A DNA stretch of 64,000 bases from Perna viridis. Lineage: Eukaryota. The stretch spans positions 55,558,862 through 55,622,861 of the forward strand of contig CM074511.1 of the NCBI GenBank assembly GCA_037379345.1. Direction: 5' to 3'. The position numbers were made by a program, and so were the translations under genes. The notes beneath the pieces are model-generated. The model did no database searches. It worked only from the letters and a program-made list of their open reading frames with translations, and was not told the origin of the DNA. Shown one piece after another: positions 8,966 through 59,320 of this stretch (its first letter is position 1; the number at the start of each line of letters is the position of its first letter).

Positions 8966-11900
8966 TTATTTTGTTTTGACACTATTAGCCCACATTCTTT
9001 CGATCGCTTCTTTGTCGTCTTTTCGCCTATGATAAATGTCCTTATAGAGCTTGTTTTTGTCCCCTTCGACTGGTTCTTTAACTTCTCTGATAGGACGTCG
9101 AGCTAATGGGTCGCCACCATGGTAAGTACCATTAACAAGTTTCACAGGCTTCCCAGAATCCTCTGGGATACTTTGATTTCCGTCCATAGAACGCAGATCA
9201 TCACCGTCCATTTCCTCCAATCTCTTTTTGTAATTGTTAAAATACGAACTGTGATCTTCGTGTTCTTTTGATTTTGAATGGACGATATTCTTGGCTATAA
9301 AATTTTTCGGTTTGGTATCACGTGATTTTGATTCTCTTGTTATGTTATCTTTATTGCCGTTAGCACTTGGTGCATTTGCCTGATTTGTAAACTTCGTAAT
9401 ATTTTGGCCAGTTTTGTTCTTCATGTATTCATTGTCTTTTGTGCTGCTTCTTTCTTCTGCTTCTTTTGGGTTTTGGGTTTTCTTTTGTTTTATCAGACGG
9501 TTATGTCTGTTGTATTTCGGTTCCAGAGCGTCTGGATCAATCAACAGACTTTCTAATGTTACAAAAGTCGGTTTATCACTCTTTTTCTCCCTCCTTGGAG
9601 ATGGAGGAGGTGTTTTCTCTATTTCTGCTTTGGCTTGACTACTATCTGGAACCACGATTTGAACACCTAGAGTTCCCGCGTTTGCTTCTATGTCTCTCAA
9701 CATTTGTTCCACCTGGAAATAGTAAATAATCCAAGTATTTATCCCGTTTTTATGAAAAGGGTGTATGTGAAAGAAAACACATTTCTCGTTGAAAACCAAT
9801 TTTACATTGTTACAAGTAAGACTAGTATTACTATGTTTCCTAAACTTTAAAGTACACATATCTTATTTCATTTACGTTTGTTTTTAATAGATAAAACGAA
9901 GAGGTCATTAAGAACATAAATATACTAACACATTCAAAGTTGACGAATGTTTGTAAAATTTAGAAAAAACGCCTTACCCATAAAAATATAGATGCAGCTT
10001 CACGACTTCCAGCGTGTACTTGCTTTGCAGAGTATGGCTCTACTGTTTTCTTTGCCTCAAACGCAAGAGCAAGGTTGGCATCCTTCGGATCAAACGTAGA
10101 CATCTGTGTTAGGTAAGACTTTTCTCCATGTTGCCCTAGTATCTTTTGGCATTGTTTCCAGGTCTGTAGTTACATTAAAACAAATCGTTACACTTTTTAA
10201 CAGGTATTAAGTTTCTAATAGAATGCAAAGAAATTAAAATGGTTTTTCAAACTCATTCTAAAACACTCAAATCACGTATTATTTCATATTCTCAGGTTAC
10301 ATTCTCAAATACCTTATATTAGATTTTCAAAGTGAAACCCCTCAACATATCTTTTAGACAGTATACCGTGGAAACCTGTCGCTGTGCTTATTTCATTTTC
10401 TGTATTTTTGTTTGTTTTCGTCAGTTTTATATGTTTTCTCTAACGTTTTTTTTTTGCCCCTTGATTTCTGCTCTTTGATAACTCCTTTTCATTTGTAAAA
10501 CGCATTTTTCGACTTTTATGGATATGACGTTTTACATGCCCTAAAAAACGAAATAGAACAATGCAATATAATATATAGTTATAATGAGATTTTTTTCAGC
10601 CGTATATTTTAAGGTATTTACGTAAAAGGTATTAACATGTCAATATCAAGGCTAACGTGGTTTTAATTGCATAACTACATTTAAATTCTCATTTACTTTG
10701 AATACAACCTCGTAAAGTCAACAGTGTTTGTTTACCTGATTTAGGTTGTTGACAGGTTCAAAAACAAGCTATAGTAATTACTGCAGGACATTTTATTTTT
10801 TGTGACGAATTATTATAAGAGTAAAACAGTACAAAATTACATCTGATAAATGCATAGTTAAAGAAGAAATCACCTGAATTTCGGCAGAACTATATCCTAG
10901 TAACAGTAGTGAAGCCATGACAGTTTGATGTACCCCGACTGGTGGTGTATTATATTGCCTTAGTTCCCCAATCATTCTGTTGTCGGTGTTTCTTACCATC
11001 TCCTGCATAGTTCGTACAGCTGCCAGTCTATCTCGCAGTCTTTTGGCGTGAATTATCTGCTGGTCAAAAATACCGTGCTCATTGGCTGCATAGGCTGCTG
11101 CTATAGCCCTGTCTAGATTGGTAAGTTCTCTTGCCTTATAAGCCCGTAGTAGGTCTGAAACAGTTGTAGCATGGTACAATACAGCCAAGTCCTTATAGTT
11201 TTAATTATTAAATTATGGAATTTTTCAGTAATAAGAATTGTTACAGTTTAATCCACCAGACTGAAATGAACACTGAAATCTTGATTAATTAAAAAAAAAA
11301 TGAACGCATATAAACAAATACTGATTACAAACCTACCATCCTAGCAGTGAACGTGTTTAAGCTATTGATTATCAATAACTTAAGGTATTCTAAATGCGAA
11401 ATTGAAACCTTAAATTGAAAAGCGAACTGTGTACTCACTATTATGTAATTAATGGGTCCTATATTAACTACAGTTTCAACTGTGTGGTCTTTTTGAATAA
11501 TAATTGATTTCAAATTCATAAAACTACAGGTAAAAGTATTTGGTATGTTTACTTAAAGTAATAATACCTACTGATTTAAAATGGTTATATTTTATCTGAA
11601 GATTTAATTTATTGATAATTGCTGTACAATCTACCGATATTATTACGTATGTTGTGCTGTCAAGAAACGATTCTAATTTTAATTTACTTATTGGGCTAAA
11701 AAGTAACTCTGAAGACTCCTTGAGATAAACTTTAGATAAACAACGGTTTCTAATTTGTCGACTGGACAATTCAATGAAATTTAATCTATATTCTAAAAGT
11801 CCTGGCCTTCGGGCATCGTGAATACAGTTTTATTACCGTGTATATAACTGTTCTATTAATTTTTATCAGCTATAACGTGTCGACTATTCGCGGGTAGGAA

Positions 11901-14900
11901 CCGTGTATCCGATCTTTCTTAGGTTCACGTCAACAATTAAACTTTTTGGCATTTCCGGCTTGATATCCGTGTCCAGTGCCGATGCATGCATTATATTCCC
12001 TCTGTTATTACAGTTTTGTATGTTACTCCTGGTTGTTGAAATTCTTGTCCAAGATTTTATCTTTCTTAACCATATACCAAGAAAAATATATGAATCATTT
12101 ATCAAAATATTCCGTTGCACCTACCATATTTAGCTTCCAACATTTTGATTTGTTTTTTACTGTTAGTAATGAGGTCATCCTTTCCATCTGGGTTACTGAT
12201 CTGGTATTGTGTCAGAGCTTGTCTGATTAGGTCAGGATCGTTGGATTGCAGTGCTTCTGCAAGTCTTTGTGCTGCTTCTATTCTTTTGTCAACTAGAATA
12301 ATTTGACATCAGTAAGCGAAGAAACATTTGTCTTAAAGAGATATTGTCTTTATTGAATTATTTTTTTTTTAATTGCTGTTATTCTTTCCCCGTTTGCTTT
12401 AATTTTGTCTACGTTCTTTTATAGATCATAAGAATTTGCTTTGTGTTGTGTTTGATAGAACATGTTCACAACATAAATGAACATACAATATGCAATGAAC
12501 AAATGGATTTTGAACAGTGATAATAGAGTAGGTGGACTTGCATACTTTAGTTTATTTTCTCTATACCAACCATCTACGTAAGTCTTCATTCTGCTGACAG
12601 TCATGTACCGCTCCATATCTGTTACGTCAGTTCCTGCCAACTGCCTCTCCTCTTTTATTATTTCCAAAACCTCTTTTGAATCATCTTCGATTTCGTTCAT
12701 GTCGTCATTCCTAGTGATAAAATAGCTTTTTACAAGCCGCATACATTGTTGTTCTAGTTGAAACACGTTGAAAATGTAGTCTCCTGGGTCATTCAGTTTG
12801 ACATTGTATATCTCAATACCCTTTTCAGTTATTCGATCAACTGAGTCCGAAGTCTGAGGTTCAGATCTGTCGGCTTTTTGTAAAAATGCCATGAGGTTGT
12901 TTTCTCCTCTAGGTACAGGGATCGATACTTCGTTAAGGATGGTTTTTATTCTTTCTGTTCTCACTTCTTTTGTCTGTCGTTGTATTTTCCTTTCTAGTGT
13001 TTTGTTTTTGTTTCCAATACTTATATTTCTACCATGCGAAATCACAAGAAACGAGTATGCATTTATTAATTTTTGAGGTTCATTCTTCCTCCTCGCGTAT
13101 ACGTTAAATCCATATTCACCCTGAATTGGTACATCCAATGAGAACCCTTGTTTATTACCCTTTCTATACGGGCTAAACCTCATTCTTGGAATGGCTTCTG
13201 GATCGTTAGTGTGAAGCTCCCCAACCAGTTCAATATCGGATTTTGCAATTACAAATTCAACATTAGCATGCCCATCCTTCGTTTCGATATATCCGCTTTC
13301 ATGGATAGTGGCCATCAGGCCAAGGTTCTCGCCAGCAAGGTCAGCTCCAAGAACATCTTGCGCTATATGGGGTAGACTGTAAACCTTGCCCTTTTTCATT
13401 GAACAATGAATCAAATAATTAAGTACGTTGTCTAGCTCCATGGTTTGAGCGTTTCTAGCGAAAAATTTCATCCCATATATACCTTTCTGGGGTAGTCTAG
13501 TTTTAATAATGTATTTTCCGTTGTTCCAGTACATAATTGCGTATTTAGACGTATTCGTATTATCTACGTATGGATTCACAAGCTTCATTTCTAACTTTAA
13601 GCTCTGTTTTCCTTCAAGTTCTATATGTAAAACTCCATCAGATGTGAAAATACTTGACTCTTCGTGAGTAATAGGTATTAAACCCAATCTTCTAGATATT
13701 TTTGTCGGACCCCAACCAATTTTAGGGTAGTCGGGCATAGGTAAGCACTCTTTTGAAAGCTCGGATGAGAGTATACAAACAGAACATATTAAATCAAATT
13801 TCTCTAATCCTTCAGTTTCTGGGTCACTAGCAAAAATGTTTACACGAAATCTTCCAAGGACAGGTATATTAAAAATAAATTCTATTTTGTCATCATGGCG
13901 CTCAAATAAAATGAAATGATGGAGTATTTTATCCAGCCTGCGCATGTCTTCGCCTTCTGGAATCATTCGCTTGAAGTTGTGCTTCAAATGGTATTTCTGG
14001 CCTCTTTTTGGAGGGAAACTTAACTCAAAATTAGCTTTCCCGTCTTTAACTTTTATGATACAATTTTTCTGTGGGTATGCAATACCCAATTCACGTGATC
14101 GCTCTCGAACATACAGCATACTGAGAAATTCACTTTTAGACACTGGTTTTTTAAGTAATTGCCATTTATCATCATCTGGAAAGTGTGTCCATATTAAATC
14201 TTGGGCATCTGTGAAGAAGTATTCGTCGTCAGCTTCTTCTTCGTGTAGAGATCTTGCTATGGACGGATTTGATTCATCGTCATCTCCAGAATTTATCATG
14301 ACGCAAGTTTTAGCCCAGTAAACATCCAAAAGACGCCATTCCCTCTGCACATAGACAGCATTCCACTGAGATTTCATTTCGGTATTTTCGGTTTCTCCTA
14401 ATTTATAGTGTTTGTTCTTTGTAATGCCGTCGACTATTTTACAAGGTACTTCGGCCATCCTAGAATTTTACATGTCAACTTTCAACACACTTTCAAATTT
14501 TATACGTACAAAAAACAAAATAATCGAGAATACTGTATAGCCTTATCGTTTTCTGGTTAAGTACATTTTATGGGTATCTGTGATACTTCGAAAGCTTTTG
14601 TCCTTAGTCTTTAAGCTGTTGCAAAAAACTTTTCTTGAATAAAATTGTAACAGTGGTGCTGTGTATTGAAAAGCCTTATACATAATCACCAAAGAGTTCG
14701 GCTAAAAAGTCGACAGTTGTTCAGTTTAAATTGAATTAAATGGATCGTGGAAAATCGTGATGTGAAATTAAATGCTAGAAATACTGTATCTGATTTTCTT
14801 CCAATGTCGTAAATTGAATGTGATGACAAGTTTTTTTTCAGACGAAAAATTGTAAGTGTGGAGAGCAGTTACTGGTTATTACTTTCAACACTTTACGACA

Positions 14901-16583: not shown

Positions 16584-16623
<40 letters not shown>

Positions 16624-18764: not shown

Positions 18765-19310
18765 GAACAGATTAAAATGAAAATTTGACCGCAGATAGAT
18801 CTCATCATGCTGAGCACTGTTACCCGGATAAGATTGGGCTTAACCATTTTGGAGATATATGCGAAAAACTGTTGTCCGATCCCTATGTTCTATTTTTAGT
18901 AACGGTGGCCATGCTTTTCGACTAATAAAAAATCCCCACATCAGTTCTGTGTATGATACCCCAAGGAACATTCATATTAAGTTTGGTTTCAATTGGTCAA
19001 GTAGTGTCAGAGGAGAAGATTTTTGAAAGAAATAACATAAAAAATAGCAAAAAACGTTGAAAATGGGCAATGACTCCAACATGGCTTAATAGATTAAAAT
19101 GAAAATTTGATCACAGATAGATCTCATCATGCTGAACACTTTTATCTCGTGTCAGAATTTGGCTAAACCTAACCGTTTTGGAGATATATGCGAAAACTAC
19201 TGTTTGACCCCTATGTTCTATTTTTAGTAATGTTTATGGCCATGTTTATCGACGGATCAAAAATCCCCACGTCAGTTCAATGCAGGATACCCCAAGAAAC
19301 ATTCATACCC
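18765..19310 (-). repeat. Inverted internal fragment (about 1.7 units of ~323 bp) of the same Helentron-associated tandem repeat
   Basis: agattaaaatgaaaatttga..cagatagatctcatcatgctga occurs at ~18768 and ~19091; the reverse complement matches 30100-30600. Confidence 0.75.
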
Positions 19311-20458: not shown

Positions 20459-22529
20459 TCACCAATCGTCATCCGAGTCCCATTCTTCACTCTCAAATAT
20501 TATGGTTCCATTTTTCTCAATAGAATATTCTGGAAGTATTCCCTTCCTTGGCGCTACTCTCTTGGACAGGACAGATTTTCCGGACTGGCATCGTTCTACG
20601 TTTCCTTGTTGGTACTCGATTACGCGAATTATTCCTTTGACCTGAAAAAAAACAACAGTAGTTTTTTTGTTTTGTTTTATGCATAAAACAACCGTTTCCG
20701 TCAAATTCATTGATAACAAATTAACTTATACCAAAAAAAATGACAGCAAGGATTTCGCTGTATTATTATGAGCCATACTCACATCCAAAAAGTAAGTATG
20801 TACATTTCTAGTATTCCAATATAGTTTCTATTAGCTATTTTCTAGATCTCCAAATCCATAGCTTTTGATATAAAAACATACCCAGAGGAAAACAGCAGCA
20901 GCCCCTTTGCTCACGTCACGTATCTGCCAGTATTTGTAAGGCTCTAGAATTTTCTTGGCTGCCTGCATGATCTTATCGTCCACAGTTCTGTGGTCAAACT
21001 GCGCCAATTTTCTTGTTAAACTTTCTTTTCCAGATTTACACAATAAGACCTGACATGCTTGCCAATCCTGTCAGAAAAAGAATTTGATTTTGAGAAATGC
21101 TTTTTCTAATATATTCTAAAACAGACAAAATTTCATCATCTTCAAAGACTTATAAAAGAAATCCGGTTAACCATAGATATGCCTCTTATATTGACTGCCA
21201 TCTCGATTTTGACAAAAGAGAAACAAAACTCTCAACTAAACTCGATGTCAGACATAACTTAATATCCCAAATGTCTTAAAACTGCTAGCAATTACAGCAA
21301 GTAAACCAGATTCTAAAAAAAAGGAGAAACCCAGCGTCTTACGCAACTTAAACCACTAGGACAAGAATACATTCAATATTTTTAGGTTGTCACATGACTT
21401 CACCCTTTTTTTCTGTAAGCGGCGCACTGTTCGTTTTTCTATACATACTTTTTTCTTGTAGGTTTTGTTTTTTTTTGTCATGTGTCTTTTTTGTGTTTCT
21501 TCATACCCGACCCCGTGTGTATATTTGTACTGATACTTCTTCATATTATTAGTAGTAGCTTAACTATCATGTTACCTTGATTTGGTCGAGACCATATCCT
21601 AACAAAAGCAGGGCAGCCACCATAGTTTGGTGAACACCATTCGGTGGGACCTGATACTTCTTAAGCTCGGACAACGATTTCTGATCTATACCAGATCCTG
21701 TCTTTGAATCATTTTCAATTTTGTAAATTCTTCCTAAAAGTCTAGTTGCTATAATGATTTTAGAATGAAGGGTCCTAGAAAATCCAGCTTGTTTTGCGCG
21801 TTCAACGGCATCCTCCAACATGCCTCCTGTTTTTGATTGACAAGCTCTGTCTAAATCTACAATAATTGGAAATATTACAAACTCAAGCTTGATTGATGAC
21901 GATTTTAGCAGGACCAACACCAAATACAAGAAACCAAGAGACAAAGAAAAAGGCGATGGAAACAAAAGAAAATGTAAATAGAAAACACCATTAAAAACTA
22001 TATAAAAAACTGCGAACAATGCTTACTAAAATTGATACCCCCAATCCCAAATTGATAACATGTACCTTTTGACCTCCAAATCGATAAGGAGAAAAATCTA
22101 AAATAGAAGGTACACAATGATTATATCTAATAAAAATTCTGTATACGTTTCATTAAATTCTACTCAGCGATGCAGGAGAAGTGAAAGATAATACATGGGT
22201 CCCATGTTCCCATATACATAAATGACAATGTCCATGTTTTGCTATGTGAAACCTCAAAATTGAATCGGAATTAAATTGCACAATTGGATTAAGTAATTAA
22301 GATTCTGTGAAATTGTTAATCAATTCCATTCTGCGGTGTATGAGGAGTAACGGATAAGAGATGGGCCTTCTGTGTAGCGAGAGGAAGGAAGGGAGGTCAC
22401 CCCTATCACTATATCATCCCATTTTGCAAGTTGGGGTATAAAGTTATTAGCAATTCGAATAAGACCTTAATTAAAAGTAAGCATGGTTTGAATCCAAGAA
22501 CTTACCCATCAAGTTGCTACTGCTTGCAG

Positions 22530-22561
<32 letters not shown>

Positions 22562-25500
22562 ATATTTTTAGTTATTTAAAAGTAATGTTAAACAATTTCT
22601 ACAGAAGATTTCCATCTTTATGTTATATAGCTTTTTTTTTTTTTTTTTTTTAGAAAAACCGGATATTCATAAAAAACTTACATTTCTGAGCTTGAAGAAA
22701 CTTGATCATTTTATTTGCTTCTAATGCGAGAGTATCTTCCCTCGTTAGATTTCTTGGGACAGAGGCAGCTCCATATACTTTCATATATCGTAATAACTTG
22801 TTCAGGTCTTTCTGGCTAATCGCCTTTTTAATATTCTTCTTTATAGTAGTTTTTGTTTCTACAACAAAATATTTTTGTCCTATATAATCGATCGTGCGAT
22901 GCAAAAAAATATCCTCCTGCTTTGTTAATCAGATAAAAGAAATTATACCTAAATATTTCTGTTGTAAAATGATGCTAAATGTTCAGTATTTGGTATTATT
23001 TATATGCATAACTTAGACAAAGCGTAAGACTTCCTTCCATTCCAATACAGAAAAAATCCAGTTTCCTTTTTTTAATTTGATATAATTCGCGTCAGATATC
23101 TTGGTAACGCGTTTATTTGTGTATAGATTAACTAATCTTCTACGAAATACTTCATTTCGATTCATTTGACTACAATAGCCTTTTTTTTTTTATAGTAAAT
23201 GCTTACCTTTTTTGTTTATTTGAACATACAGTGTAGAATGTATCAGTCCGGAGTATTTGAAGCCAGGTAACAGTAACGAAGGTGCCTGAATATACCTTAT
23301 TGATCACATAACGATTCTCTTTTATACCATGTTTCGATTTTTATGAATTGTGTCTTGTTTTTTTATAAGAAAGTTTGTTTTATTTTTACTATTTGCTCCA
23401 TAAAAACAAACAAAAAAAAAACTGAATAGTCAGAAATGTCAACAACAATATTTGACATACTAATGAATATAACTAGTTCTTTGTCGTTCACAAAAAGCAG
23501 TCGGATTGATTGTTATATATAATGCCCGAAGCACTTGTTTATTATGACCGCGATTTACATTTACAACAAGCAGTGTTTTTCCCTTCAGAAAAAAAGGCTG
23601 AATTCAATAAACTCTTATGGCCCTCAACTCTAAAAGGTTAAATAATGAACCTTTACCTTTGAATCTTACTTTACTCGCCTTTGTTACAGGGCGACTGAAG
23701 TAATCTGCCTCTTCCTCGTCAAATAGACCACCTAGGTCCATATCATCCCAGCTATCATGATCAATTTCAGGATTAAATTTTCTTACTATATAATATCTGG
23801 CTAAAGTTTTTAAGCCTTCTTCAGAATCTGACTTAAATATGTCAAGTGTAAACTCCCCAGGAAATTTCAAATGCACTTCCAGTTCGTTTTCTTTTTTCAC
23901 CACTCTTGTGACTCTATGAAGTTGATCCTCTGGAATTGTGCTGCTCTGTAGAGAAGAAGATATATACCTGACATCTGTCAAAGCTGGAAGAACAACCAAC
24001 GGTTCTTGAGTCACAATCGTTTCATGTTTTATTGACGTATGTTTGCTATCGTTCGTTTCTTTTAGCATATCTGGAAAAGGATGTCCCGATGAATTGATCA
24101 AACCGCTGTAAATTGGCTTTGTTTTGTTGTCAGCATTTCTACCCATTAAATTGAAAGAATACAGTCCTTTAATTGGCATATCCAGCTCAAAAATCCAATT
24201 TCCGTCATCGTCGGTATAGTTTTCGCATGTCATAACCTTTGAAGCTTCATCGTCTGTACTGCAAAGCTCTGGATATAAACGCACGTCCGGTTTTGCTTCA
24301 AACTTTAGCTTTACTATTCCGCCTTCAGCTATAACTTGACCACTCGACATTTCTGTTGCAGACACAAATCCGTCACTATTCTTTTTACTAGACCCACTTT
24401 CGTTGTTAATGTCTTGTCTTTTGTTATTGTTATCATTGGCATATTGATAGCCCATTGTAGACGTCTCAACAACATCGTTTCCTCCAGTTTGGTCTTCACC
24501 ATTTACTCCGTTGCCTGCATAAGTGTCTTTTATTCGCGAACTAGCGTTTGTATTTGTTTTATTTGTCCCTTTCTTGTCCCTTTTTTTGGCAGTCGCAGAA
24601 CGTGCTGTAGAAGAATCATTTTCATCAGCAGTTGATATTCCTCGAAGATCTTTATCGTTCATTCCCGGAATCGTAACACCGATTTCCTCTGCACTGTTCT
24701 GAATCCCGAGGTGATCTCCCATTATGGCTGGTAAAGGCTGTACTTCTATGTCTTGATTGTTTCCTTTAATCAAGAATGTCAAAAGATTTGTGAGTACGCT
24801 GTCTTCAGGCTCATTTAAAAGTTTTACAAACACCTTCAGTGCAAATTCTCCGTCAAATGGCACCTTTGTATGAATCAAATATTTTCCTTTCTCAAATCGA
24901 CCAGTCGAGAATCGGCTTAGTTCAGCGTCACTCATTGTTTTACATTTCATTCGATGATTTACTGTTCGTAATTTATTCATTGCTATCGAGATATCAACTT
25001 CTCCTTTGATGGCTTCAATTATAGACACCTTCGGCGAAGGTATGACTCCGGATTTTAAAGCATACGCATTTGGACCCCAACCTAACTGCGGACAGTCAGG
25101 AAACTCTGTAACGTTTATTTCCTCTTCTCTAGCACATTTAATGCCGTATGTGCACAATAGATGGTACAGTTTATCAGAAACTGTGTCTTTGCCGTATATA
25201 TCTAAACGATAGGTACCCGGGAACGGTACCCGTACCGTGTAGCTCAGCTTATTACTTGAGTGTTCAAACATTACAAAGTGTCTGAGACTTTTTCCTTCTG
25301 AATTGTGTTCAGATTTTATCAGCACTAAATTGTGGGCGTATCTAAAGTCATGACTTCTACTCTCAGGGAGATCAAAGCCAAGTTGAATTTTATCAGCTTT
25401 AGTTTTGAACAGACACTTATCTGAATTGTTTTTTGCATTCATTTTCATTCCCATCAGATGGAAGTGCTCTCGGATATAAGGAGCGTTTTGCCATTGTTTG

Positions 25501-28344: not shown

Positions 28345-28379
28345 GCAAACATCAGCAAACATCAGCAAACATCAGCAAA
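28345..28379 (+). repeat. (GCAAACATCA)x3.5 minisatellite
   Basis: Direct reading of the sequence. Confidence 0.9.
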
Positions 28380-32940: not shown

Positions 32941-35900
32941 CTATATTCTAACCACTGTTCGCTCCTTTGGTATAGCTGAAAGCATAGCAGGACGTGGTCT
33001 TGATGATTTAGGTGGCCTTTCTGACTTTCCTATTTTACTGCGATTTTGAATTTGATTAAGAATACCAGTAACCTGAATAAAATAATAGCTCAACAGTTGA
33101 GATAAAATATGAAGATATTAAGTTCCATTGCATGATTATTACGAAACCAAATAGTTGATTGAAATACACGGACCGCTTGGTAGCTTATACAGTTTTGTTT
33201 TCGATTGGTTGTTATTTCACTTTTTGTTCCTTTCGAACTTCAGGTAGTTTCTTTTGACAATTTTGCAATAACGCTTATCAATAAATTTTCAGTTATTTCA
33301 AATCATTACCGAAACTTTTTCTGATGTTTTATTCAGTTAATGGTATGATACATCGTTTTAAATATGTAGGATGGAATTTTTAACATGGGGATGTACACAA
33401 AAATGTATTTTGTAACTAAAACAAATGTTTAAATTCATTTTACCTACATTCATTCTTCAGAGTTGAAAAAAACATTGATATTTCCCTTATTCAAATTTAT
33501 CTGTCTTACTTCAGATATGATCTTATTGTTAGTTAAATGATATCAGCCGATTAAAATTGTTGAGTTTTAATTTTTTTAAAAGTGACATTTTGTTTATATG
33601 CGAGAACTTGATGCCTACCCAGTTATAAAAAGTTGCAGCACCTTTACTAACGTCACGGATCTGTACAAAACTATAAGGTTCTAGAATTTTCTTTATTTTC
33701 GTCATCATTTCCGGTGTGACGGTGTTGATGTCAAATAAGGTAACACGACGCATAATATGTTCTTTTCCTGTTTTAAAAAGGATGGCCTGACATTCTTTCC
33801 AAGTCTAAGAAAAATGAAAAAAAATCAGAATTGGTATTTCAATATCAGTTCAAATTTTGATCTTCATAAAACATTCAATGTGTTTCCAAGGACACTATGC
33901 ACCTAAGACCCTAATACAAGAAAATAGTTGTATGCTATAATAAAAGAGAATAGACAAATAAAAGAAACATTGGACCGTACTACCTTTGTTTTCAGACTTA
34001 GGTACTCCTCCATAATTGGTATTTTTGGAGTGAAGGTTCCAATTTTTTTCTAAAGAAGTTACTTTTAGTCCTAGGATATTTTTGGTTCTGTGCATTATGG
34101 GTTTTTTCTGTGTTTTTTTTCTGTGCTTTGTTACGGTCGAATTTTCTTTTATATGGCAAACCTTTATTTCACTTCCACTCATGTGGCCTACCTTTAAAGA
34201 TTTGGGATTATCTCCAAGGAGTATGCATGTTGCTTTCAGGACATGAAGAACGCTTTCATGTGGTGTCTGATATTTCTTCATTTCAGTCAGAATGTTCTGG
34301 TTCATGATAAGTAATGGTTTTGTCAGTCTTTCTATCTCTCTCACTCTCTGTAAGATCTTTTTTGTCAGACTAATCTGCATGTCTAATTGATGGTCGTAAT
34401 TTACGTCTTCTGCTCTTTCAATGTATTTCTCCATTACCTTTGGATCTCGTAAACGACATGCCTCAGCCATTTCTAGATAAAATTTGTATTGAATTAACAT
34501 AAAAAGCATTATTAGTTTTTCCCTTGACTAACAAAAGGGAAGAATTGTGGAAGTGCTATATATACACAATGGTGTGAAATCAAGATAAGAGGAACGAAAG
34601 CGATGGTACATATGTTCGTAAGGAATTGAACAGATACTGTGATTATTGAAATAAATATACTTTTTTGGTTTGATACTATGCAATTAAAACAATTAATTAT
34701 AATCCAAATTATACTGTGATTATTGGGTGTTGTAATCGACCATGAAACATTGACTATACATCAAAGCCTATAAATGGATCAAGTTTGCGCCTTTTCTCTC
34801 CTAATAATTCGCAAACCAAAAATTTAAAAAGAAATATTTTATCACTGATATCCGTTTTACCCCCCCTCCTTTTTTCATTAAACATGCTACTACAAAATGA
34901 TTCATATATATGGAGTCAAAAACTACTATTTTCAAAGTACTTGTTTTTCGACGATTATTTTATATTGACAGGATAAGTTTGCCCACTGATTTTCCTTTTT
35001 TTATACCTCCTGCTCTGTTATTTCTTCTTATGCAGTAAATTGAGATAGACTTGTATTTCGTAACTGGCACATAAAAAGTCACATAGTAATTTCTTTTAAT
35101 TACTTAATTTTGTATCGCCATTTCCATATATAACTTACTTTCTTTTGCGATAAGCCCTTTCACTACATTCTGGGTATACACATATATTTTGTCATCGGGA
35201 TCCAACCCAACTTCTCGAAACTTCTTCAACTGGGATTTAAGTTGACAGAGATCTTTTGACTTTAGCGCTTTTGCCATCTTCTTTTTGATACTTTTTTCCT
35301 GGACTAGAATATAACATTTTAGCGTACTGTCACACCAGTGTATATTGATATGTTATTTTAATAATTAATGTTTTTGTTTGCTTTATGCTTTGTTTTGCTT
35401 TATATCTTTAAGAGTACATTGCTGTATATATAAAATATAGATCGGAGAATGCGGATCTAATAAGGGCTTTTTTTTTTTTAAACTTTTTACCTTTTTTGTA
35501 TCGCTCTCTTGCTGCCTCCTCAAGTGGATCCATTTGTTCCAAATCCATGGCCTCCTCTGTTATAACCCCAGATGTCGTTTCTTCTGAAATAACTAAAGAC
35601 TTTATATCTTCATTGACAGCTTCGATTTCCTGATATTCATTAGAAATTACTTCGTCGTCGTCTTCGTCCACCTCGGCATTGTCACTATCAGAATCTTCAC
35701 TACAAATTTCTTCAAACTGTCCTTGCTCAAAAACACTGTTTTGCCTGTCAGGTATGGGTTCCTCTATCGGCATAGTATCATTTCTTGGTTTAAGTGTATT
35801 TACTAGCTCCTGAAAGTCGTCTTCAAATATGTCATCTTCTCTCTTCCTATGAATATAAAATCGTCCGGTTGTTGCTATGATATCTTCAAACTTGTCGTAA

Positions 35901-38900
35901 ACAAATACCTCGAGTAAGTACTCGCCGTAGTCGTTTAATGTTACAAGAATCATGTCATCAACTGATTCAGCTTTTAGCCCCTTTCCATCTTCGTAAAATT
36001 TTTCGTCCGTTTTGCGTATCGTTGTAAATATTTTCTCATATAGCATCGGTTTAGGAATAGATAGACGGATTTCGGAGTCCGATGTTATAATTGTTTCTGA
36101 TATTAGATTTTCGACAAAATTGTCATCTTTGAATCTGACTTTTCTGGTTACATTTCCATCTGAATGAATAAAGAAACTGTGAATTTGATACAGTTTTGTG
36201 TCATTGGTATTTTTGAAAGCAAAAACATTCACAGAGTACTCTCCTTCTATTGGCATATTTACATCAAATGACCATATGTCATTCTCTACCCTGCTGATTA
36301 CAGATACCCGAGTATTGCCTTCACGTTTACAACAAGAGAGTTCACAGAGAAGTTTTAACTGTTTGTCAGACTGAAATCGAAGATTCGCTTTGCCTTCCGG
36401 AGCTTTTATAATGTCTCCTCCTTCATTTAGGTATTTTACGCCCAATGATATTGCGTCTAATTTAGCACCAAGTTTGCCATCTGGTATATTAGGAAAAGGT
36501 AAATTACATGGTCTGTCATCGCCTTTAAATTTTATGATAAAGTTCAACAAATCAGAAGGTAAATTTTGCGTAATTGTGCCCGACGTTTCTTCCACATAAA
36601 ACTTGATTGCATATTCTCCTTCGCGTGGAAGTTTAACATTTGCTAAGTATCTGTCGCCCTCTCTTCGTGTCAATACATGTCTGCTTAGATTGCTTGGATC
36701 AATCAATAAGCTTTTAAGCATGTGTGACATTTCAAACTGCTTTTGAACATGGACGACAAACTCAAGAATACCATTCCCAGTTTTGACAAATGGTGTTGTA
36801 GGAGAAATTGCGTAGATGCCTAATTTATCTGCATGTGGATTATTACCGAACCCGATTTCAGGACAATCCGGGAACGGTAAACATTGGTCCTTAGGATCCA
36901 CACAATCAATCATATATGTTGCTAGCAATGAAAAATTTGTTGTCTTTGTGAAATCACATGCATAAACGTCATACTGATATTTACCGTAAAAAGGCAAACG
37001 TATTTTAAATGTAACCTTTTCTAAGGAATGAATAACACTTACGAAACGTTCAAGTAAAATATCTACTGGTTTGTTTGTCTCAATTTGTGTTCTATGTTGG
37101 GTAAGCATGAATCTGAATGTTAAATTTGGACTTCTCTTCTGCTGAAGGTTAAATGTGATATTGACGGTTTCTTTGTCGGAGAACAGTTTACATTGATTTG
37201 AACTCTTTTCCACAGTACTCATTTCATAAATATGAAAATATTCTCGAAGGAAAGGCATCGTGATGAATTTTGACATCGCTATAGGTTCATGTAGAAGTTG
37301 CCACATTTCGTCATCTGGATAATGTGTATATATCAAATACTCTGGATCAGTTAAAAAATAAAATTCGTTGAATTTAACAATATCGTCAATATCTCCTCTG
37401 CGTGTCACAGTCCCATTAGTATCAATGAATAGGGTATTGTTTTCATTACCTCCAGATACACACGTGGATGCCCAAAATGTATCAACTAAACGCCATTGGC
37501 CATTTATATACACAGCATTCCACTGACCGCATGATTCCTCATAGTCAATGTCATTACCAACTTCATAAGCACCTGACTTTGTCACTCCATTTATTATAAC
37601 ACATGGTAGATCAGCCAATCTGCAAAATATTTTGCACAAAAATACAACATAAATGCAAAAGAAATGAGTTATAATGAATTCATATATATTTCAATACTGA
37701 TGTGTAAGAGAACATTCTTCAGTACGAAGATAAATAGAATAAAAACAGTATGTAAACTGAAAAAAAAATACAGACCAAAAATAAATAAACACACCGCATT
37801 TAAGCAACTTTATGAGTAGAAACAACTTCGATTTATCGTAATAACATGCAAATATATTTTGCTGATGATTATTATGTACATGTGAAGCTGAAAGTTCTAT
37901 TACTTAAACACAATAATTAGCATACAACACAATACTAGTAGTTTTATTGTTTATACATGTACTTACAGGCACAGTGAATACAACAGCTGAGCATGTGTTT
38001 CTAGACCACATTGTATCTTTAGCATATGTTCTAGTGGAGAGTTAGTTGGCGGAATCATTTCTGCGTCGATACTGTACACGTCATATGACGTCATCCATCG
38101 AAATATTGCTCGAATTTTCAACAAGTCACCGATCTGTTTGCCATCTGGTGTCAGGACTAAATACTCTACGACATCCCAGATAGTTTTTGTAAGAATCTCT
38201 AACGGAGCCTGGAATAATACAAACCGAAATAAATATATTCAGACGACTATACTCGTGGTCATGGTAACAGCTGAGATTAACCTTTTTGAAAGGGGTACTA
38301 TAGTATATGCTGGTTTTTGAAATCATTTAAATTTATAGGATATGGTGATGCATGTGTTTTCATATTATAACATTATACATTTTATTGTTTGATGAAAAAT
38401 ACATGTTTTATGCACCCACAAAAACTGGACTCCAAGATGCCAAGATTACTGTCCCTAAAGTTATTCGACTGTCTTTTTGCATCCATTACTTAACTTTGGA
38501 CCAGTTTTTTTTTTTAAATATAGATCCAATACTTAATTGCTTTTGGCTAACCAATTCATTTTTTTTCAAATTTGTCAATAAATGCCTACCTGAGACACTA
38601 TATAATCTATATCCGTAAAGTCGACATTCTTTAGAACATTCTTCTTTGAAGTCCTCGGAGGCAATGGTCGGGGTTGATCAAGAGTACTGACTGTTCCACG
38701 TCTTACAGAAGAAGCATTTGAGCGATTGGTTTCTAGTGCCGATGATACCACACTGATTCGGTCGGTCACCGCTATTGTTTCTCTACGTTTCGCTGTATCT
38801 CTTGGTGATTCTCCGTTCACATTCTTTAAAATTTGTCGCTGAAATCATGGTTAACGAAAATCAAATCATTTGTAATTTTCATTTTAACAAGCTACAATAA

Positions 38901-43806: not shown

Positions 43807-46800
43807 CTAACGTTTCTTCTTCTTTCTTCCCTTGTTTGTTTTGGTACCACCTGTTACCGGATCCTCCTCTTGTTTACCTCCAGTAGACTCTACTTCTTCT
43901 ATCATACCTTTGGCCTGAAACAGTAAATAATTTTTCATCTTTTGTGTTATTCTATTATTTTGTTTTCATTGTTTTTTGTTTTTTTTTTGGGGGGGTGGGG
44001 GTAGCGGGTTAGAATGTATTTTTTTGTATTAGAATGTGGTTATGTGAAAATTAACTGAGCTAGTAGTCAGAAATTGCAAAACCTGTTAACGATAGCTAAA
44101 ATTTTGTAGTATGAAATACAAGACGCAGCCTTTTTTAATAAAATGTTTTATTTTTCTGTGTTCAACAAAAATCTAGGGAATCCAGATTTTTGCGGAAATC
44201 AAAAAAATGTAATCCAGGGACAAAGACCAGAAATGGAAAACAGACAAACACAATAAAGAACATAAAATAATCAAAATAATACATACATAGTATCAAATGA
44301 GCAAGTTGGACTCCACTAAAAATTGGGAGCATGGACCAGGTTCACCGGTAGGGTAAGCGTCCTCTGCTTTTCTAGAAACACCCGCCGAGATGCTCATAAA
44401 AAGTCAAGTCCGGGGTAGACAAGTTAAAAATACTTATTAGAAAATAATTAAGTTAGTGTATCATGAACACTGACAACAAATCCGTAAGCCAATAAGTCCG
44501 GACACAACACAAACTGTTACAATAATTAAGGTTACAAGACATATTCACAATTGGCTCATACCCCTATTAACATTTTGAACATATCTTTTCTTACCCAAAC
44601 AAAGAATGTAGCGGCTCCGGCACTAACATCACGGATATGTTCTAATGTATAACCAGAAATTGCCTTTTTAGAAGCCAATGCAGCATCTAGGAAACAGTCT
44701 TTGGGGTCGAATTTTTGGATTTTTCTCATCACAGACTCTCTACCAGTTTTACCAAGTATAGACTGACATGTCTTCCACACCTGAAATATCACAAACATCA
44801 TAGAAATATAACCCCTTGTAACATTGAGCACAATGTAGGTATCAACAATGATATTTTCTAGGAAAAACAGATGCACAAAAATAATTGACTTCGTTATCAA
44901 CTAAACAAACAAGTAAAGTTCATATCAAGGAAATATCCGGACACAATAATGAATTACAAACTCAAATCCAAAGCCAAATCATTTGTTGCTTTACCTTAAC
45001 TTCTTTCATTGTATGACCAAGTAGTAAGAAAGCTCCCATGAGAGATTGATGTACACCATCTGGTGGGTTAGAGTATGTTTTGATTTCAGCAATAGTTTTT
45101 TGGTCCATATTCAGCACTGAGTGTCTCAACTTCTCAATTCTGGCCAACTGATCTCTCAATCGCTGTGCGACCACGATCTGTAAATCAAGCTGGTTGTCAA
45201 AGTTGGCAGCTTTAGCTCTTGCAAGAGCTTTGTCGAGAGCATCAAGTTCTCTTCTTTGAGAAGCATTCTGTAGTTCTGAAATTCAACAAGAAGACTAGCT
45301 TTGAAAGAGACAAATATAAGTAGGATGATACCTAAAATGTTTTACATGAAGTTATGAAGGCAATAAAAACTATTTTCAAAACAATCACTTACCTGTTCTT
45401 TGTTTTGTTTTTTGTTTGGTTGGTTTTTTTTGTTTAAATCATTCTGCTGTAACATTCTCTAATTTAATTTTTTAAATTTTAATTTTTTAAAAGTGTAAAA
45501 AAAATATCCTAAACTTCAGCACATGGGACATTTGGCTACGGTCAACATAAAATAGGGCTCAGTACGTCCTAAAAAAACTCTCAATATACACATTCTGCAT
45601 AACTTTAATGAGTTCAAATTGTAAACAAACCGAATACAATGACGTTATATATCAGGCAAAACCTTATTAAGATGAAGGAGATGTAAAGATTTGTTCTGAT
45701 GTTTTGTGTTGGAATATATAAACTAAACACCAATCCTTGCTGGATGATACTTAGACAGGATGATAAAACAGACCTATGCTTTTAATTTTGGGAGTAATTT
45801 ATGTTTGAATATGTCAAAACATGTTGTAGCTGACATATCTGTATAAAACATATCTTACCTTCCTTAGCCTGTAATAGCTCAAGCCATCTTCTTGCTTTCT
45901 TAACAAATTCGTCATCCTTTCCACCATTACTTTCATACATAGCAATAGCTTTCTCCAGGGAGTATTGGTCCTTCTGTTGGATTGCTCTATCCATAAGTTT
46001 TCTAGCATTTCGCCTCTGAACCTCGTCATCAGATAAGTCCCCGTCATCCTCTGGCACAATTTCTTCCTCTTTGGGTTTCTGCAGGAGTTGCTCCATAAGC
46101 ATTTTAGCGTCATCTTTGTATAACTCAGATGCTGGTTTACGATTAATTTGGTACCTTGCCAGGTGAGTTAGAGTACCATTAACATCTCTATCGTAAATAT
46201 CCATCATATATTCCCCAAAGTCTTCCAGTTTAGTAAGGAACAGCTTGAGACCATCTTGTTCCATTTGTTTAACATCTTCACTATTAGGTGGATCATCAGC
46301 ATGTCTTCTATGGAAAGATGCAACAACACTATCATACCCTGTCGGAGCAGGAATCAATATTTCCGGTTCAGATGTTTCCACTGTTTCTATAATGACATTT
46401 GGTTCTTTCTTGTCGTCTTTCATAGTATCAATCTTTTCTTCGTCTATTCCATGACCATCTGACTCGATGAGATAGGAATGAACATTGTAAACACGTGATG
46501 GGTTGTTCTTTTCCCGAGCGAATACATTGAGAGAATATTCTCCTTCAATAGGCATGTCCATATCAAACGTCCAGGTCCCATTCTTGTTAGTTGGTTTGAC
46601 CGTCATGTATTTTCTAGCATTTGGATCATTGCTATGTATTTCACAAACAAGTTCGACATCATTTCGTGCTTTGAAAGTAACCGAAGCCTTTCCATCTTTT
46701 GTGACTACTGAACCACCTGGGTGACTTACAGCTTTAACTCCAAGTTTCTCCGATATAGATTTCGTACCAATCTTTCCATCTGTAACATTCGGGAAAGGTT

Positions 46801-49800
46801 CGTTAGTTCCCTTTTCAATAAACTGCACTAAATAGTTCAGAACGTTTGAAGCATCACCATCCTCGCCCTCGTCATTTGCATAAAGCTTCAAAGCATACTC
46901 GCCATTTTGTGGTAATCTTAAATGAACGGTAAACTCGCCATTCTCTTCACGGATGACTGCGTATTTACTCAAAGTTGCCTCGTCTACTATTGCGTTCTTT
47001 AGCAGTTGATGAAGTCGGACATCTTTGTGTGCACCAAGTTTAATGTCAACTTTACCGTCCTTCGATACAATTATTGCTCCATCGTGGCTCTTTGCCTTCA
47101 AACCGGCATTTTTTGCCTCAACACCAGGACCCCAACCTATCTCAGGGCAGTCTGGTAATGGCATACAATTCTTCTGTGCTTCATTACAAGAAATCAAGTA
47201 GGTGCAACACAAGTCAAAAACATCGGACTCTCTTTCATCTAAACCAAAAATGTCCATTTTAAATTTGCCAACAACTGGAAAACGCAATGCAAATCGTAAT
47301 AAATCAGAATTATGCTCAAACATAACAAATCTTTCCAACGACAAATTACCATCATCAAGTCCACTTTCTGCACGGTTTTGATACAACATATATTTGAATC
47401 TGAAATATTCACTTTTCTCCTTCGGAAGTCCGAATTCTAATCCAATTTCCCCTTTAGGTGCATTAAGTTTACACAGATCCTTACTCTTGTCAGTGTAAGA
47501 CATGTCTAAGTAATAGAATCTTTCACGAACATACGTGTGGTTCTCAAAATCAGCCACTGTGCGTGGTTTTTCCAAAAGTTGCCAAGCTTTTTCATCCGGG
47601 AAATGTGTCCAGACAAACTGGTCAGGATCGGGTAAGAAATAAAACTCGTTTACTCTGTGTTGTGTTTCTCCTTCAGAGGTCTCCTCATCATCCTGTGTGA
47701 CGTTGCCGTCTGTATCGACCAATGTCCATTCGCCAGATTTTTTACCGACGACACAAGCAGAGGCCCAAAAAGCGTCGACGAATCTCCATTCGCCGTCAAT
47801 ATACACGGCATTCCACTGAGCACCCATCATTTTACGGTCCACTTTGTTACCAACTTCGTATGCAGCACTTTTGTTCATACCACTGATAATAACGCAGGGT
47901 ACACCGGCCATTCTGCAAAATAAAAAAAAATATTTCTAGTCAACAAAATTTCCATCCTTTATATATGTATGGTTCATTCTGCTTGACACCAATTAGGAAT
48001 GGCACTGGTTGACAGTGATTTATATGATACATGTTTTAGTAATGTTTATTGGACTTGAGAAAGTTTTTACCATTTTTCTATTATCAGTTCATTTGACATT
48101 AAATCTGCAAATGGAATGATGATACTGCAAGATGAAAACTGGTACAAGAGAGTTATTGTATTACTTCATAATTTTACTAAACTGCTTTCGTTGGCAAATC
48201 AAAATATATGAGCTTGCAAACACTACAAAAAAGCCAATCAGTGAACATTAGTCTTCAATTCCACTGAAGTCACTAATACTTACTGACATAATCCCGATAT
48301 AAGATGGGCGTGGTTACCCATATTTTTCTGTATTTTGATAAAGTATTCTAGAGGAGAATGGGTAGGTGGGTCACTCTCTGTCTTGAGACTATACACGTCT
48401 ACTGAGGTCACCCATCTAAAGATGGCGCGCACTTTACTCATATCATCCCAGTTCGGATCCTTAGTTATATAGGCGATCAACTCCTTAAAAGTGCCCACTA
48501 TCAAATTGGGAGGAGACTGAAAAAAAAATGCATTTTTATTCGAAAATACTAAACACAAGCTCAGTTGTAGCATTTTATTTAAACAATTTATATCCATGAT
48601 TCTTCTGACAAGTAATTCTATGGAAGAAAAAATGGTTTGATATAAAATCGAGTTTTAACAGGCAAGAAGGTCGTATAGAAGTTTTTTTTTTCATTCCATC
48701 TGATGTTGTGTACGTGTGACGGATTGTATTTGTTTCGTGGATATAGTTTCATAAAATTTCTTATCAAAAACTTTTTTCAGAAAACAATGGGTATAATGTC
48801 ATTAATCATTTAATCATGAAAGTTGATAAGTTTCCTTCTAATATCAAAAAACTGTCTCGTTATAACAACATAGTAATATAACGAGTTTTAAAAAATGCAT
48901 ATAATTTGTTATTCTAATTCCGGGTGTTGAGATACATAAATTCGAAATGGATTCATGCTGCCTTGTTGTGACATCAAAGTTAACCAAGCGTATGGAATCA
49001 CACCCAGTTTGGCTCGAAATAACTTACGTTGAGTGCATAATCATCAACTTGTTTGAATCTTTCAATCTGAAACACTTCTGCTTTCCGTCTTTTTGGGGGG
49101 CATGGTGGAGGAACCTGGGGTTTGGATGATTTCCCTCTGTCTGTATTTGTGGTTTTCGGGCGAGAATCCTAAAAAATGAATCAAAATAATTAATCCTCAA
49201 AACAGTTAAGTTTCAAATTTTCTGGTGTATGATAATATGGGAGGGAAAATTGGCATTGGGTGTTTTAATGTAAGATGGGTGGGATGAGGTGGTGATTTCT
49301 TTTATGTAGTGATAACATTTAACTTGATTGAAACAACGAAGAACTATAAAGGATTACATGTAATGTTGCATAGAAAAATTAAAAGTGCTATGGGGAAATA
49401 TTGGGAGTGAGATTAATTCTCTAAGAGGTATTGAATCGAATATGTACATGGTGCATGAGAATTTGGGGTTAATGGATGTGGTAAGTGGGAAGCAAACATT
49501 ATCTAAGAGTTATACATAATACAAAACTTAATTATAGTCTTTCATTTTTTTTCATTTACGTGATAATATAATTATTTCAGTTAACTTTAGATATCATTTG
49601 ATTGACTCGCAATCATAAAAGACCTTATCAAGTAAAAAAAAATATCCCACTGGTAAAGCATGTGGATATTGAAATCGTGTCTGCCTACTTCAAAAGTAAA
49701 AATGTTGATTAATAAGTATTAATTTTAAGATAATGCAAGTCATTTAATACAACTATACAACATCTATCACTCGGTGCAATAAACAATAATGTCAACTAAA

Positions 49801-51443
49801 TATGACACACGTAGTCACTTAAAAAAAGAAAAACGGTGCTCACAGAGTCGTGAGACAAGCATGTTTTAAAACTCAACGACAGTGAAAGAAAGGGTGACTG
49901 ATAGCATACAACTGGGAAAATTGAGTCAATTGTAGAAATTAATGCCTTGATTCCTGTAAAGGCTTAAAGTCATACAGTATTTCATAACATAATAATGGCG
50001 TAAATTTAAATAGTACTTCATGGAGAGGTTGTATAATGCAGCCTTGTGTTACATAATAAATTTTAATTTCGTTTTAAAGCCTCCTACACTCATATATCCC
50101 CAAAAATGTTGAATATTTCATTTATACAGCTTTGATAATTAAAATAAGGTTTAAATTGTCTAATAAGACAAGTCTAATTGAAACACGTTTTAAAAGTATT
50201 TTGCTATTTCTGAAATTTTCGGATGGAGAATTGAAATTATGGCTAGGATATTGGTTCGAACTATATTAAGTATGTTATTCAGAGGGCTGCTACCTTATTT
50301 GAAAATGATTAATATCAGTCAAGTTTTGTCATAAAATACTTTTCACAGTTAAATTTATGGTAAAATTTTAAAGCTATTTGTTTTAAAATCGTGTACAAAG
50401 AATAAATCTTGATCAGATGATAATGCAAATAAAAATTATGATATATCTATTAATTTTCGTATTTTTTATTACTATCCACATGCAAAATAAAAAGGCATTT
50501 ATTATAACAAAATACAAAATCTTTTGTATTTACTTATACCACGAAAAAACTACATACATGAAGAATAGAGTTTGTAACACTCAGGCTTTTGGGTCAATTA
50601 TTATAGGTTTTCCCAGAAGAGGAGCACTATAAAGAAAATTTACATTTGCGACTACAAGTTTTTCTATAGATCATCTATGAATTAAAACATTGAATATTAA
50701 AACATGCACGTACAAGTATAAATGAAATCATTCATTTATAATGTATATCTATAGAATTGGAACAAAGGTAAAAAGGAAAAAATATTTATAATTTTTTGGT
50801 AAAATTAGAGCAAGAATCTAAGTAGAAAGTTTTATACCTGTTTCAACCGCTCTTCATTCTTTCTTATACATTTATGTCGTAATAATTCTATTCTGCAACT
50901 CTCACGGTCGTTTGAAATTGCTTAAAACCCATCTCAAACCATATTCACTAAAATCTTAATTGCTTTATATCCTAAAATTTTCTTTTTATAGCCATTAATG
51001 GGTCTTCAAATTTTGCAAGTGAATTTAAATGTTGAGAACTAAAAACTTTATGTTGTGTCATAAAGGACCTTTTAAACTTTATTTTGTAACCACACACATT
51101 TGATTGAGAAAGTTACAACTTATTCACGTGTTTCTCTTTCGTAACTTGAAATTTAACATTAAACAATATTTTTGTGGTCTCATCAATATTTGTAATCATT
51201 ACATCTTATAATAGATGTTGTTCTTTTTTATGATTTTGTTTTAAATAATTAAGACTTACAGTCTGTCGTTAATATTTTGAATTAATCTTTAAATTTCATA
51301 ATTTAAAATCATAGATTGAAACAGGTTATTATAAGTGCAAGCAGACTCACAGGTGCCTTTTGTGTTTCGCCATTTACTTTGCTAACTTGAGGTGAAGACC
51401 TGGGTCTATCTTGTTTGACCTGAGAACTTGACCCGGAACCCAT
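43807..51443 (-). CDS. Paralog E: putative N-myristoylated KY/hillarin-like TGc pseudo-enzyme + Ig-like repeats + dynein-MTBD-like domain with polybasic C-terminus (~1031 aa)
   Basis: Exons 51443-51351 (aaacaccATGG, MGSGSS...), 49168-49028, 48516-48284, 47912-45859, 45275-44995, 44780-44595, 43914-43807 (...GRKKKKR*); sum 3096 nt, all GT-AG, open frame. Confidence 0.92.
43900..45108 (-). other. Dynein stalk MTBD-like domain coding region of paralog E (split over three exons)
   Basis: Spliced translation MDQKTIAEIKTYSNPPDGVHQSLMGAFLLLG...WKTCQSIL...IQKFDPKD...YTLEHIRDVSAGAATFFVWAKG follows the dynein MTBD pattern E-[IV]-[KR]-x4-PP-x2-V...LLG...W...F-[DS]...S-x-A...W. Confidence 0.78.
44176..44423 (-). 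mobile_element. Short 3'-end copy of the same retroelement family in the last intron of paralog E
   Basis: Shares aatgtaatccagggacaaagaccag...gggtaagcgtcctctg...aagtcaagtccggg with the other copies. Confidence 0.75.

Positions 51444-59274: not shown

Positions 59275-59276
<2 letters not shown>

Positions 59277-59319: not shown

Positions 59320-59320
<1 letters not shown>

Follow-up and report, generated by a model that had tools for sequence, protein, structure and literature searches.

A motor-less dynein microtubule-binding domain at the C-terminus of KY/hillarin-like proteins encoded by a tandem gene cluster of Perna viridis

We analyzed a 64,000-nucleotide stretch of the genome of the mussel Perna viridis (contig CM074511.1, positions 55,558,862 to 55,622,861 of the forward strand; hereafter the window), which carries five tandem KY/hillarin-like paralogs, genes A to E, all on the minus strand and arranged head to tail. 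Near their C-termini, the products of genes B to E and their relatives contain a module that we identify, from sequence profiles and a predicted structure, as a true homolog of the dynein microtubule-binding domain (MTBD), comprising the end of the stalk helix CC1, the helices H1 to H6 and ~10-12 residues of the stalk helix CC2. We regard the homology and the fold as established because profile searches of the Protein Data Bank (PDB), a match to the Pfam MT family and AlphaFold/Foldseek comparisons agree. In dynein, the affinity of the MTBD depends on an ATP-controlled sliding of the two helices of the stalk, and to our knowledge the domain has been described solely as the tip of the dynein stalk. 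Our preferred reading, to which we give a probability of roughly 0.6, is that B to E and their relatives are lipid-anchored proteins with a transglutaminase-like domain (TGc) and KY-type immunoglobulin-like domains (KY-Ig), in which the motor-less MTBD would act as a constitutive, ATP-independent microtubule anchor.

Sequence homology of the module to the dynein MTBD

The module is encoded by an exon of 281 nucleotides (exon X), an exon of 186 nucleotides (exon Y) and the start of the last exon. For the searches, the exons of the window were used singly, and the contiguous module was taken from natural cDNA contigs and database proteins of relatives. Exon X of gene E alone found a dynein heavy chain as its best match in the PDB (phmmer, E 0.005), at the correct place in the stalk. 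Matches of exon X to alpha-actinin spectrin repeats (E 0.4-1.8) were set aside because they vanished with a profile of the four paralogs. This profile, built from the four copies in the window, matched 49 PDB chains, 45 of them dynein, with a best E of 3.6e-5. Exon Y alone stayed below significance against the PDB; its third-best match, the dynein chain 8glv_Fm (residues 2882-2934), begins where the match of exon X leaves off. Once contiguous with the rest, in cDNA and in family profiles, the sequence of exon Y reached significance. The cDNA contig L001 supplied a single module of 168 residues, which matched DNAH6 over residues 2-159 (E 4e-4) and aligned with the mouse dynein-1 MTBD across H1 to H6 with two 3-residue insertions. 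With a 20-row profile the match to PDB chains extended from CC1 through the start of CC2 (best E 3.5e-8), and with a 40-row full-length family profile 19 of 20 matches were dynein MTBDs (best E 1.3e-9).

In P0046, an ortholog from Gigantopelta, the Pfam MT family (PF12777) exceeded its cut-off of 24 bits with a score of 33.5, and the match covers profile positions 94-213 of 344, corresponding to the globular tip; nine of 40 relatives match it at E ≤ 0.01. The likeness to the dynein MTBD that a first-pass annotation of this DNA had proposed is therefore significant by profile, both in the PDB searches and, in this one ortholog, above the Pfam cut-off. The family retains the dynein signature, namely E..K/R in H1, the PP..V turn, LLG in H2, the Trp of H3 and S.A....W in H6. 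The gene E peptide quoted in that annotation is also present, and exactly eight residues, divided by an exon junction, separate its LLLG motif from the conserved Trp; the sequence FFVWAKG, split after FFVW, straddles the last exon junction of the gene. Axonemal inner-arm heavy chains come first among the dynein matches, with small differences in score between the dynein classes. Chance falls far short of explaining the likeness to dynein.

Predicted structure of the module

AlphaFold2 predicted the 168-residue module with a pLDDT of 93.3 and a pTM of 0.84, with the helices in the expected order. When the model was compared with the PDB by Foldseek, the top 26 matches listed were all dynein MTBD or stalk structures, with probabilities of 0.98-1.00, reaching 1.00 for 3ERR, 6RZB, 6KJO, 6KIO and 2RR7. 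The Foldseek E against 3err_A was 9.8e-5, and the root-mean-square deviation (rmsd) was 2.2 Å over 125 columns for 6kjo (TM 0.71, the highest value) and 3.7 Å over 149 columns for 6rzb_C. A structural match to the dynein MTBD, as the annotation had anticipated, is thus obtained with the predicted model. Two weaker Foldseek matches were to non-dynein axonemal chains, 7jtk_C, a radial spoke 1 subunit (E 0.07), and 9fqr_Xl, a 1096-residue protein of the bovine sperm doublet (E 0.5).

Missing motor and shortened stalk

The module comes without the rest of dynein. No AAA or dynein-motor Pfam family was found among 40 full-length relatives, and no Walker A motif occurs in any real open reading frame (ORF) of the window, where four chance matches lie in open stretches of 19-47 codons; the earlier statement that AAA and Walker motifs are lacking was borne out by both searches. 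The PF12777 match ends before CC2, and in the predicted model the final helix stops at residue 166, ~11 residues past the Trp of H6 (position 155). The resulting CC2 stub is conserved, is acidic at positions 161, 162 and 164, and ends in Gly-Gly (EE.E..GG). A CC1-like helix with conserved basic positions 45, 48 and 50 faces it. In the DNAH6 alignment the stub lies opposite the VKEVEP stretch of CC2, and the helix-breaking Gly pair therefore falls beside the Pro of that stretch. A long antiparallel CC1/CC2 stalk is absent, and the stub is followed by a C-terminal tail of 4 to ~300 residues. From the sequence and the model, the CC1 face and the acidic stub may together form a minimal, locked stalk base.

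Gene structure and domain architecture

Exon coordinates were obtained from a minus-strand reading downstream of the large exon of gene E, followed by tblastn mapping of the paralogs. Each of the paralogs A to E has one large exon of ~2 kb carrying Pfam Ig-like_KY (PF23265) with 143-214 bits. Gene E comprises seven coding exons totaling 3096 nucleotides, a reading frame of 1031 codons:

51351..51443, minus strand: coding exon 1, start codon and MGSGSS; from the ORF and a GTGAGT donor, matching the N-terminus of the Mytilus trossulus model P0001
49028..49168, minus strand: exon 2, basic, proline-rich linker with PPPxPP; tblastn with P0001, borders read
48284..48516, minus strand: exon 3, first half of TGc; tblastn with P0001, borders read
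45859..47912 (ORF 45782-47911), minus strand: large exon, remaining TGc, three Pfam-scored KY-Ig domains, fourth divergent Ig-like segment, acidic linker, helical repeat 1
44995..45275, minus strand: exon X, 281 nucleotides, helical repeat 2, CC1-like helix, MTBD helices H1-H2
44595..44780, minus strand: exon Y, 186 nucleotides, MTBD helices H3-H6
43807..43914, minus strand: last exon, acidic CC2 stub ending GG, polybasic C-terminal tail, stop; colinear with P0001 and cDNA contig L001

Proteins of the family are predicted to be cytoplasmic and have ~1000-1200 residues. They begin with an MGxxxS/T acylation motif, in many cases MGC, which is followed toward the C-terminus by a proline-rich basic linker, a TGc-like domain, three or four KY-Ig domains, two or three helical hairpin repeats, the MTBD and a variable, usually basic tail. 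An MG start that fits the myristoylation pattern, with a small residue at position 6, was found in 72 of 88 full-length relatives having both the module and TGc, and many of these begin with MGC, with the Cys3 expected of a palmitate site; Gly2 is at least 90% conserved in alignment A5. In the window, gene E starts in this way at 51443, and candidate MG first exons are located at 30970 for gene C and 39177 for gene D. Between the acylation motif and TGc, PPPxPP and basic residues are conserved (gene E 49028-49168; A5 consensus), and PPPxPP could be a ligand site of the SH3, WW or EVH1 type.

TGc (PF01841) was matched in 38 of 40 relatives, with 34.4 bits in P0001; the TGc pieces in the window lack a Pfam score because the domain is split over two exons. 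In the columns that we take to hold the catalytic triad, which were placed provisionally by the canonical motif spacing as we assume it, E-type proteins have Met/Gln/Asp, and Cys-His-Asp occurs in 0 of 245 domains. This is consistent with a TGc pseudo-enzyme, as far as the aligned residues indicate. The large exon of gene E scores 213.8 bits for PF23265 and contains three separate Pfam-scored KY-Ig domains (103, 63 and 53 bits); a fourth segment shares the GEY...Y motif and is unscored. The first 50 positions of the module weakly resemble the segment just upstream, which fits tandem helical hairpin repeats. No LIM domain was matched in the relatives scanned; one was seen only in the distant P0097, which is without the module. 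Tails are mostly basic across the family. E-type proteins have a short polybasic tail, unlike gene B, where 248 residues follow the module (49 Lys/Arg, 31 Ser/Thr, 20 Asn and 16 Pro; net charge +8); a long tail is also found in oyster P0077. The first-pass annotation had given the architecture as a possibly myristoylated N-terminus, a TGc pseudo-enzyme, four Ig domains, helical repeats and MTBD. The order and the parts stand, the N-terminus as a motif and TGc as a putative pseudo-enzyme, with the four Ig domains amended to three scored by Pfam and one divergent.

The exons located for the other paralogs are as follows:

35408..37639 (ORF coordinates), minus strand: gene D large exon, end of TGc and KY-Ig domains
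34192..34472, minus strand: gene D exon X, 281 nucleotides; tblastn, splice borders
33619..33804, minus strand: gene D exon Y, 186 nucleotides; tblastn, splice borders
32941..33072, minus strand: gene D candidate last exon, CC2-stub-like start and basic tail; inferred from a phase-0 AG search with motif filter
23604..25811 (ORF coordinates), minus strand: gene C large exon, KY-Ig domains with a long low-complexity insert
21576..21856, minus strand: gene C exon X, 281 nucleotides; tblastn, splice borders
20882..21067, minus strand: gene C exon Y, 186 nucleotides; tblastn, splice borders
20459..20641, minus strand: gene C candidate last exon; an ORF whose start resembles the CC2 stub of relatives
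12419..14458 (ORF coordinates), minus strand: gene B large exon; identical ORF on the Logan contig P0264
12123..12293, minus strand: gene B extra helical-repeat exon, 171 nucleotides; tblastn with oyster model P0077
10874..11154, minus strand: gene B exon X, 281 nucleotides; tblastn, splice borders
9978..10163, minus strand: gene B exon Y, 186 nucleotides; tblastn, splice borders
8966..9712, minus strand: gene B last exon, CC2 stub and 248-residue tail; colinear with oyster model P0077
884..2803 (ORF coordinates), minus strand: gene A large exon; its MTBD exons would lie beyond the left edge of the window
178-348, minus strand: gene A extra helical-repeat exon, 171 nucleotides, counterpart of that of gene B; tblastn with P0077

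The last exons of B, C and D were placed by phase and by the likeness of their first residues. Exons X and Y of B to E, which the annotation had called conserved, all have an AG acceptor and a GT donor (8/8), and their lengths are identical between the paralogs. Paralog A leaves the window at its left edge ahead of the module exons.

Transcripts, distribution and constraint

In relatives of gene E, the module and the rest of the protein are expressed as one transcript. Nine intronless, transcript-type contigs (L001-L009) each hold a single ORF of 965-1065 residues that includes the module, and the RefSeq model P0001, the top protein match of the gene E large exon (88% identity, which places the DNA in a mytilid bivalve and not in human), is likewise one ORF with TGc, KY-Ig, helical repeats and module. 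The earlier proposal that the TGc exons are joined to the module exons therefore holds in transcript contigs and RefSeq models of relatives, and the same joining is probable for B to D.

A search of 1.84 billion representatives, aimed at the module, ran with a full-length profile of 1032 positions and gave 8223 matches, from the KY-like superfamily rather than from new settings of the module. The profile had become full-length because six full-length rows outweighed the module-only rows, and the returned proteins were then scanned with a module-only hidden Markov model (HMM) whose rows came from a mollusc, annelid and brachiopod set. Of the 232 KY-like proteins fetched, 116 contain the module by this HMM. 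They belong to bivalves, gastropods, annelids (Helobdella, Owenia and Dimorphilus), the brachiopod Lingula and three Branchiostoma species; in databases these proteins are named 'uncharacterized', 'hillarin-like', 'KY', 'ltd-1-like' or 'kyphoscoliosis peptidase'. A region-restricted word search, of low sensitivity, placed the module in KY-like proteins (569-1810 residues) and in no others. Amphioxus modules score ~160-170 bits against the module HMM, and dynein MTBDs ~35-40 bits in separate searches of the PDB with the full-length profile; from this difference we infer that a single fusion before the protostome-deuterostome split may have given rise to the family. The MTBD core has a mean identity of 60% among 40 relatives, second only to TGc (69%), and the module is under strong purifying selection.

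Some members depart from the common plan. The amphioxus proteins P0105, P0121 and P0115 have as many as eight KY-Ig stretches, and a CARD domain (PF00619, 22-25 bits) is inserted after the KY-Ig repeats and ahead of the MTBD. A shorter subfamily of ~700-750 residues, found outside this window (the scallop and abalone 'hillarin-like' proteins P0124, P0188, P0192 and P0225, each of ~740 residues), has TGc, fewer KY-Ig domains and the same module at the C-terminus. P0102 (1437 residues) contains three copies of the module and is probably a gene model fusing tandem paralogs.

Locus and surrounding DNA

The window is AT-rich (31-37% G+C), and Rfam and tRNA scans across it were empty. Upstream of gene E, window positions 52000-64000 contain no ORF of at least 120 codons, no Rfam family and no tRNA; the AT skew switches sign in this part, possibly where the cluster ends. 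An interspersed repeat family (250-515 bp, 86-92% identity) has copies at 3480-3980, 31647-32161, 44170-44422 and 52952-53311, in introns and intergenic DNA, the third of them inside the intron preceding the last exon of gene E. A second repeat family occurs at 18751-19309 and 30074-30600, partly inverted.

Discussion

Microtubule binding and membrane anchoring by the B to E proteins are both predictions, drawn from sequence motifs and the structural model. In the mechanism that we propose, the module would bind the microtubule lattice as the dynein MTBD does, in the tubulin intradimer groove through H1, H3 and H6. Since there is no stalk to slide, one registry would be fixed by the basic face of CC1 together with the acidic CC2 stub, and the module would therefore anchor constitutively, independent of ATP. 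At its other end the protein would be kept on a membrane by the acylated N-terminus, with the TGc-Ig body serving as spacer or adaptor. Basic residues are conserved in H1, in the H3-H4 loop, in H4 and in H6, and the core has a median net charge of +4. According to Lacey et al. 2019 (PMC6629372), the dynein MTBD is 'permanently primed' for binding and essentially pre-formed, movement being limited to H1 and CC1. The retained signature residues, the conserved basic residues of H1, H4 and H6, the basic tails and the pre-formed nature of the MTBD together favor microtubule binding. The broader proposal, an ancient bilaterian family of lipid-anchored proteins in which a registry-locked MTBD, bare of stalk and motor, acts as a passive microtubule anchor, we put forward tentatively, at slightly under even odds.

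Several observations weigh against the anchor reading or some part of it. Searched singly, the exons and ORF pieces of the module gave only noise against Pfam, and P0001, the nearest ortholog of gene E, falls short of even E 0.1 against Pfam MT. The PP motif is degenerate in paralog D. In the HMMER alignment with mouse dynein-1, the two H1 lysines face Asp-Gln in E-type proteins, with a Lys one position later; the interface would therefore not be identical to that of dynein-1. The model is slightly closer to a low-affinity yeast structure (2.2 Å) than to a high-affinity one (3.0 Å), a difference within possible AlphaFold bias, and the registry that is locked may equally be that of low affinity. 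At the other end of the protein, lipidation is predicted from a motif match, and no MG start was seen in the window for genes A and B. When B-type transcripts were sought, all matches were single-exon ORFs of genomic origin, and no transcript was found for B to D.

The same module might instead serve in motile cilia or flagella, where the proteins would be structural parts docking on axonemal microtubules rather than cortical membrane tethers; we consider this unlikely, although it is the strongest of the alternatives. FAP246, a TGc-containing subunit of the C1b projection of the Chlamydomonas central apparatus (Zhao et al. 2019, PMC6548120), is the only non-dynein relative of the profile with a solved structure, but the similarity is limited to the TGc part. 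In the larval proteome of Babylonia, a 'kyphoscoliosis peptidase' drops together with radial spoke head protein 1 at a stage linked by the authors to velum atrophy (PMC5908917); the protein measured there could be any of the KY paralogs. The axonemal inner-arm heavy chains at the top of the dynein matches would also fit a ciliary role, subject to the small score differences noted above, whereas the conserved N-terminus of dual-acylation type points to a membrane, with the ciliary membrane included as an option.

Rather unlikely as well is that the module kept the MTBD fold and lost microtubule binding, becoming an interaction or scaffold domain for some other protein partner. The positions aligned to the two H1 lysines of dynein-1 are not conserved, CC2 is truncated such that the high-affinity registry may never be reached, and paralog D has its degenerate PP motif; DNAHX illustrates that dynein-derived parts can lose microtubule binding (PMC11785096). 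Conversely, what the family conserves in H1, H2, H3 and H6 is the dynein signature, H1, H4 and H6 keep basic residues, the module is among the two best-conserved parts of the protein, and the tails are mostly basic, all of which argue against such a loss. An artefact, whether a likeness between helices that arose by chance or the erroneous assignment of another, downstream gene's exons to the KY-like genes, would fit the lack of Pfam matches for single exons and the non-significance of exon Y alone; it is dismissed as having next to no probability, being ruled out by profile matches down to E 1.3e-9 that are almost exclusively to dynein MTBDs, by the agreeing Foldseek result, by uninterrupted ORFs spanning both parts on transcript contigs of six relatives, and by exon lengths and phases repeated four times in the window.

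A full-text literature search returned no paper linking KY or hillarin with the dynein MTBD and none describing a motor-less dynein MTBD. The suggestion of a new family stands to the extent that no description was found; on the other hand, the family is widespread beyond this locus, its members carry database names, and PF12777 is already present in the precomputed tables of a few orthologs. Precomputed Pfam tables attach PF12777 to at least one ortholog, and the co-occurrence was therefore latent in databases, yet undescribed. If the broader proposal is right, this would be the first natural case of a dynein MTBD working outside a dynein heavy chain, and a natural experiment on an MTBD whose coiled-coil registry is fixed. 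For dynein biology, it would imply that the MTBD can be exported by exon shuffling and used alone, and a natural 'locked' MTBD could help to dissect affinity states. For the poorly understood KY/hillarin family, which includes a human myopathy gene, the finding points to a microtubule link. For the cell biology of invertebrates (molluscs, annelids, a brachiopod and amphioxus), it offers a candidate tether, either linking membrane and microtubules or associated with cilia, and hundreds of 'uncharacterized' or 'hillarin-like' database entries could be better described.

Comparison with known systems

Compared with the dynein MTBD itself, the module has homologous sequence and the same succession of CC1 end, six helices H1 to H6 and start of CC2, with the shared signature, in a domain of ~105 residues that differs from mouse dynein-1 by the two short insertions. 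It differs in having neither the ~15-nm antiparallel stalk nor the AAA+ ring, in that CC2 ends after ~10-12 residues in the acidic EE.E..GG stub, in lacking a flap insert, and in its position at the C-terminus of an unrelated multidomain protein.

With KY, hillarin and LTD-1, which are cytoskeleton-associated relatives, the present family shares TGc (PF01841) followed by KY-type Ig (PF23265). It adds the C-terminal dynein-type MTBD, the helical repeats and the N-terminal acylation motif, and no LIM domain was scored in the relatives scanned, whereas the hillarin/LTD-1 subtype has an N-terminal LIM. We know of no MTBD module in vertebrate KY, fly hillarin or worm LTD-1. Vertebrate KY has been tied to filamin C (PMC6078408).

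FAP246, from the C1b projection of Chlamydomonas (PDB 7N6G/7SQC), matches the TGc region of the family profile (chain 7n6g_6E, E 1.7e-9) and is a subunit of the microtubule-associated C1b complex of the central apparatus (PMC6548120). Its similarity covers ~100 residues of TGc only; the protein also contains LRR and EF-hand parts and gave no MTBD match. DNAHX, a non-motile dynein heavy chain, is alike in that dynein parts are used without motility (PMC11785096). It is the mirror image of the present family, since DNAHX keeps the AAA+ ring and reportedly has a disrupted MTBD, whereas the proteins described above keep the MTBD only.

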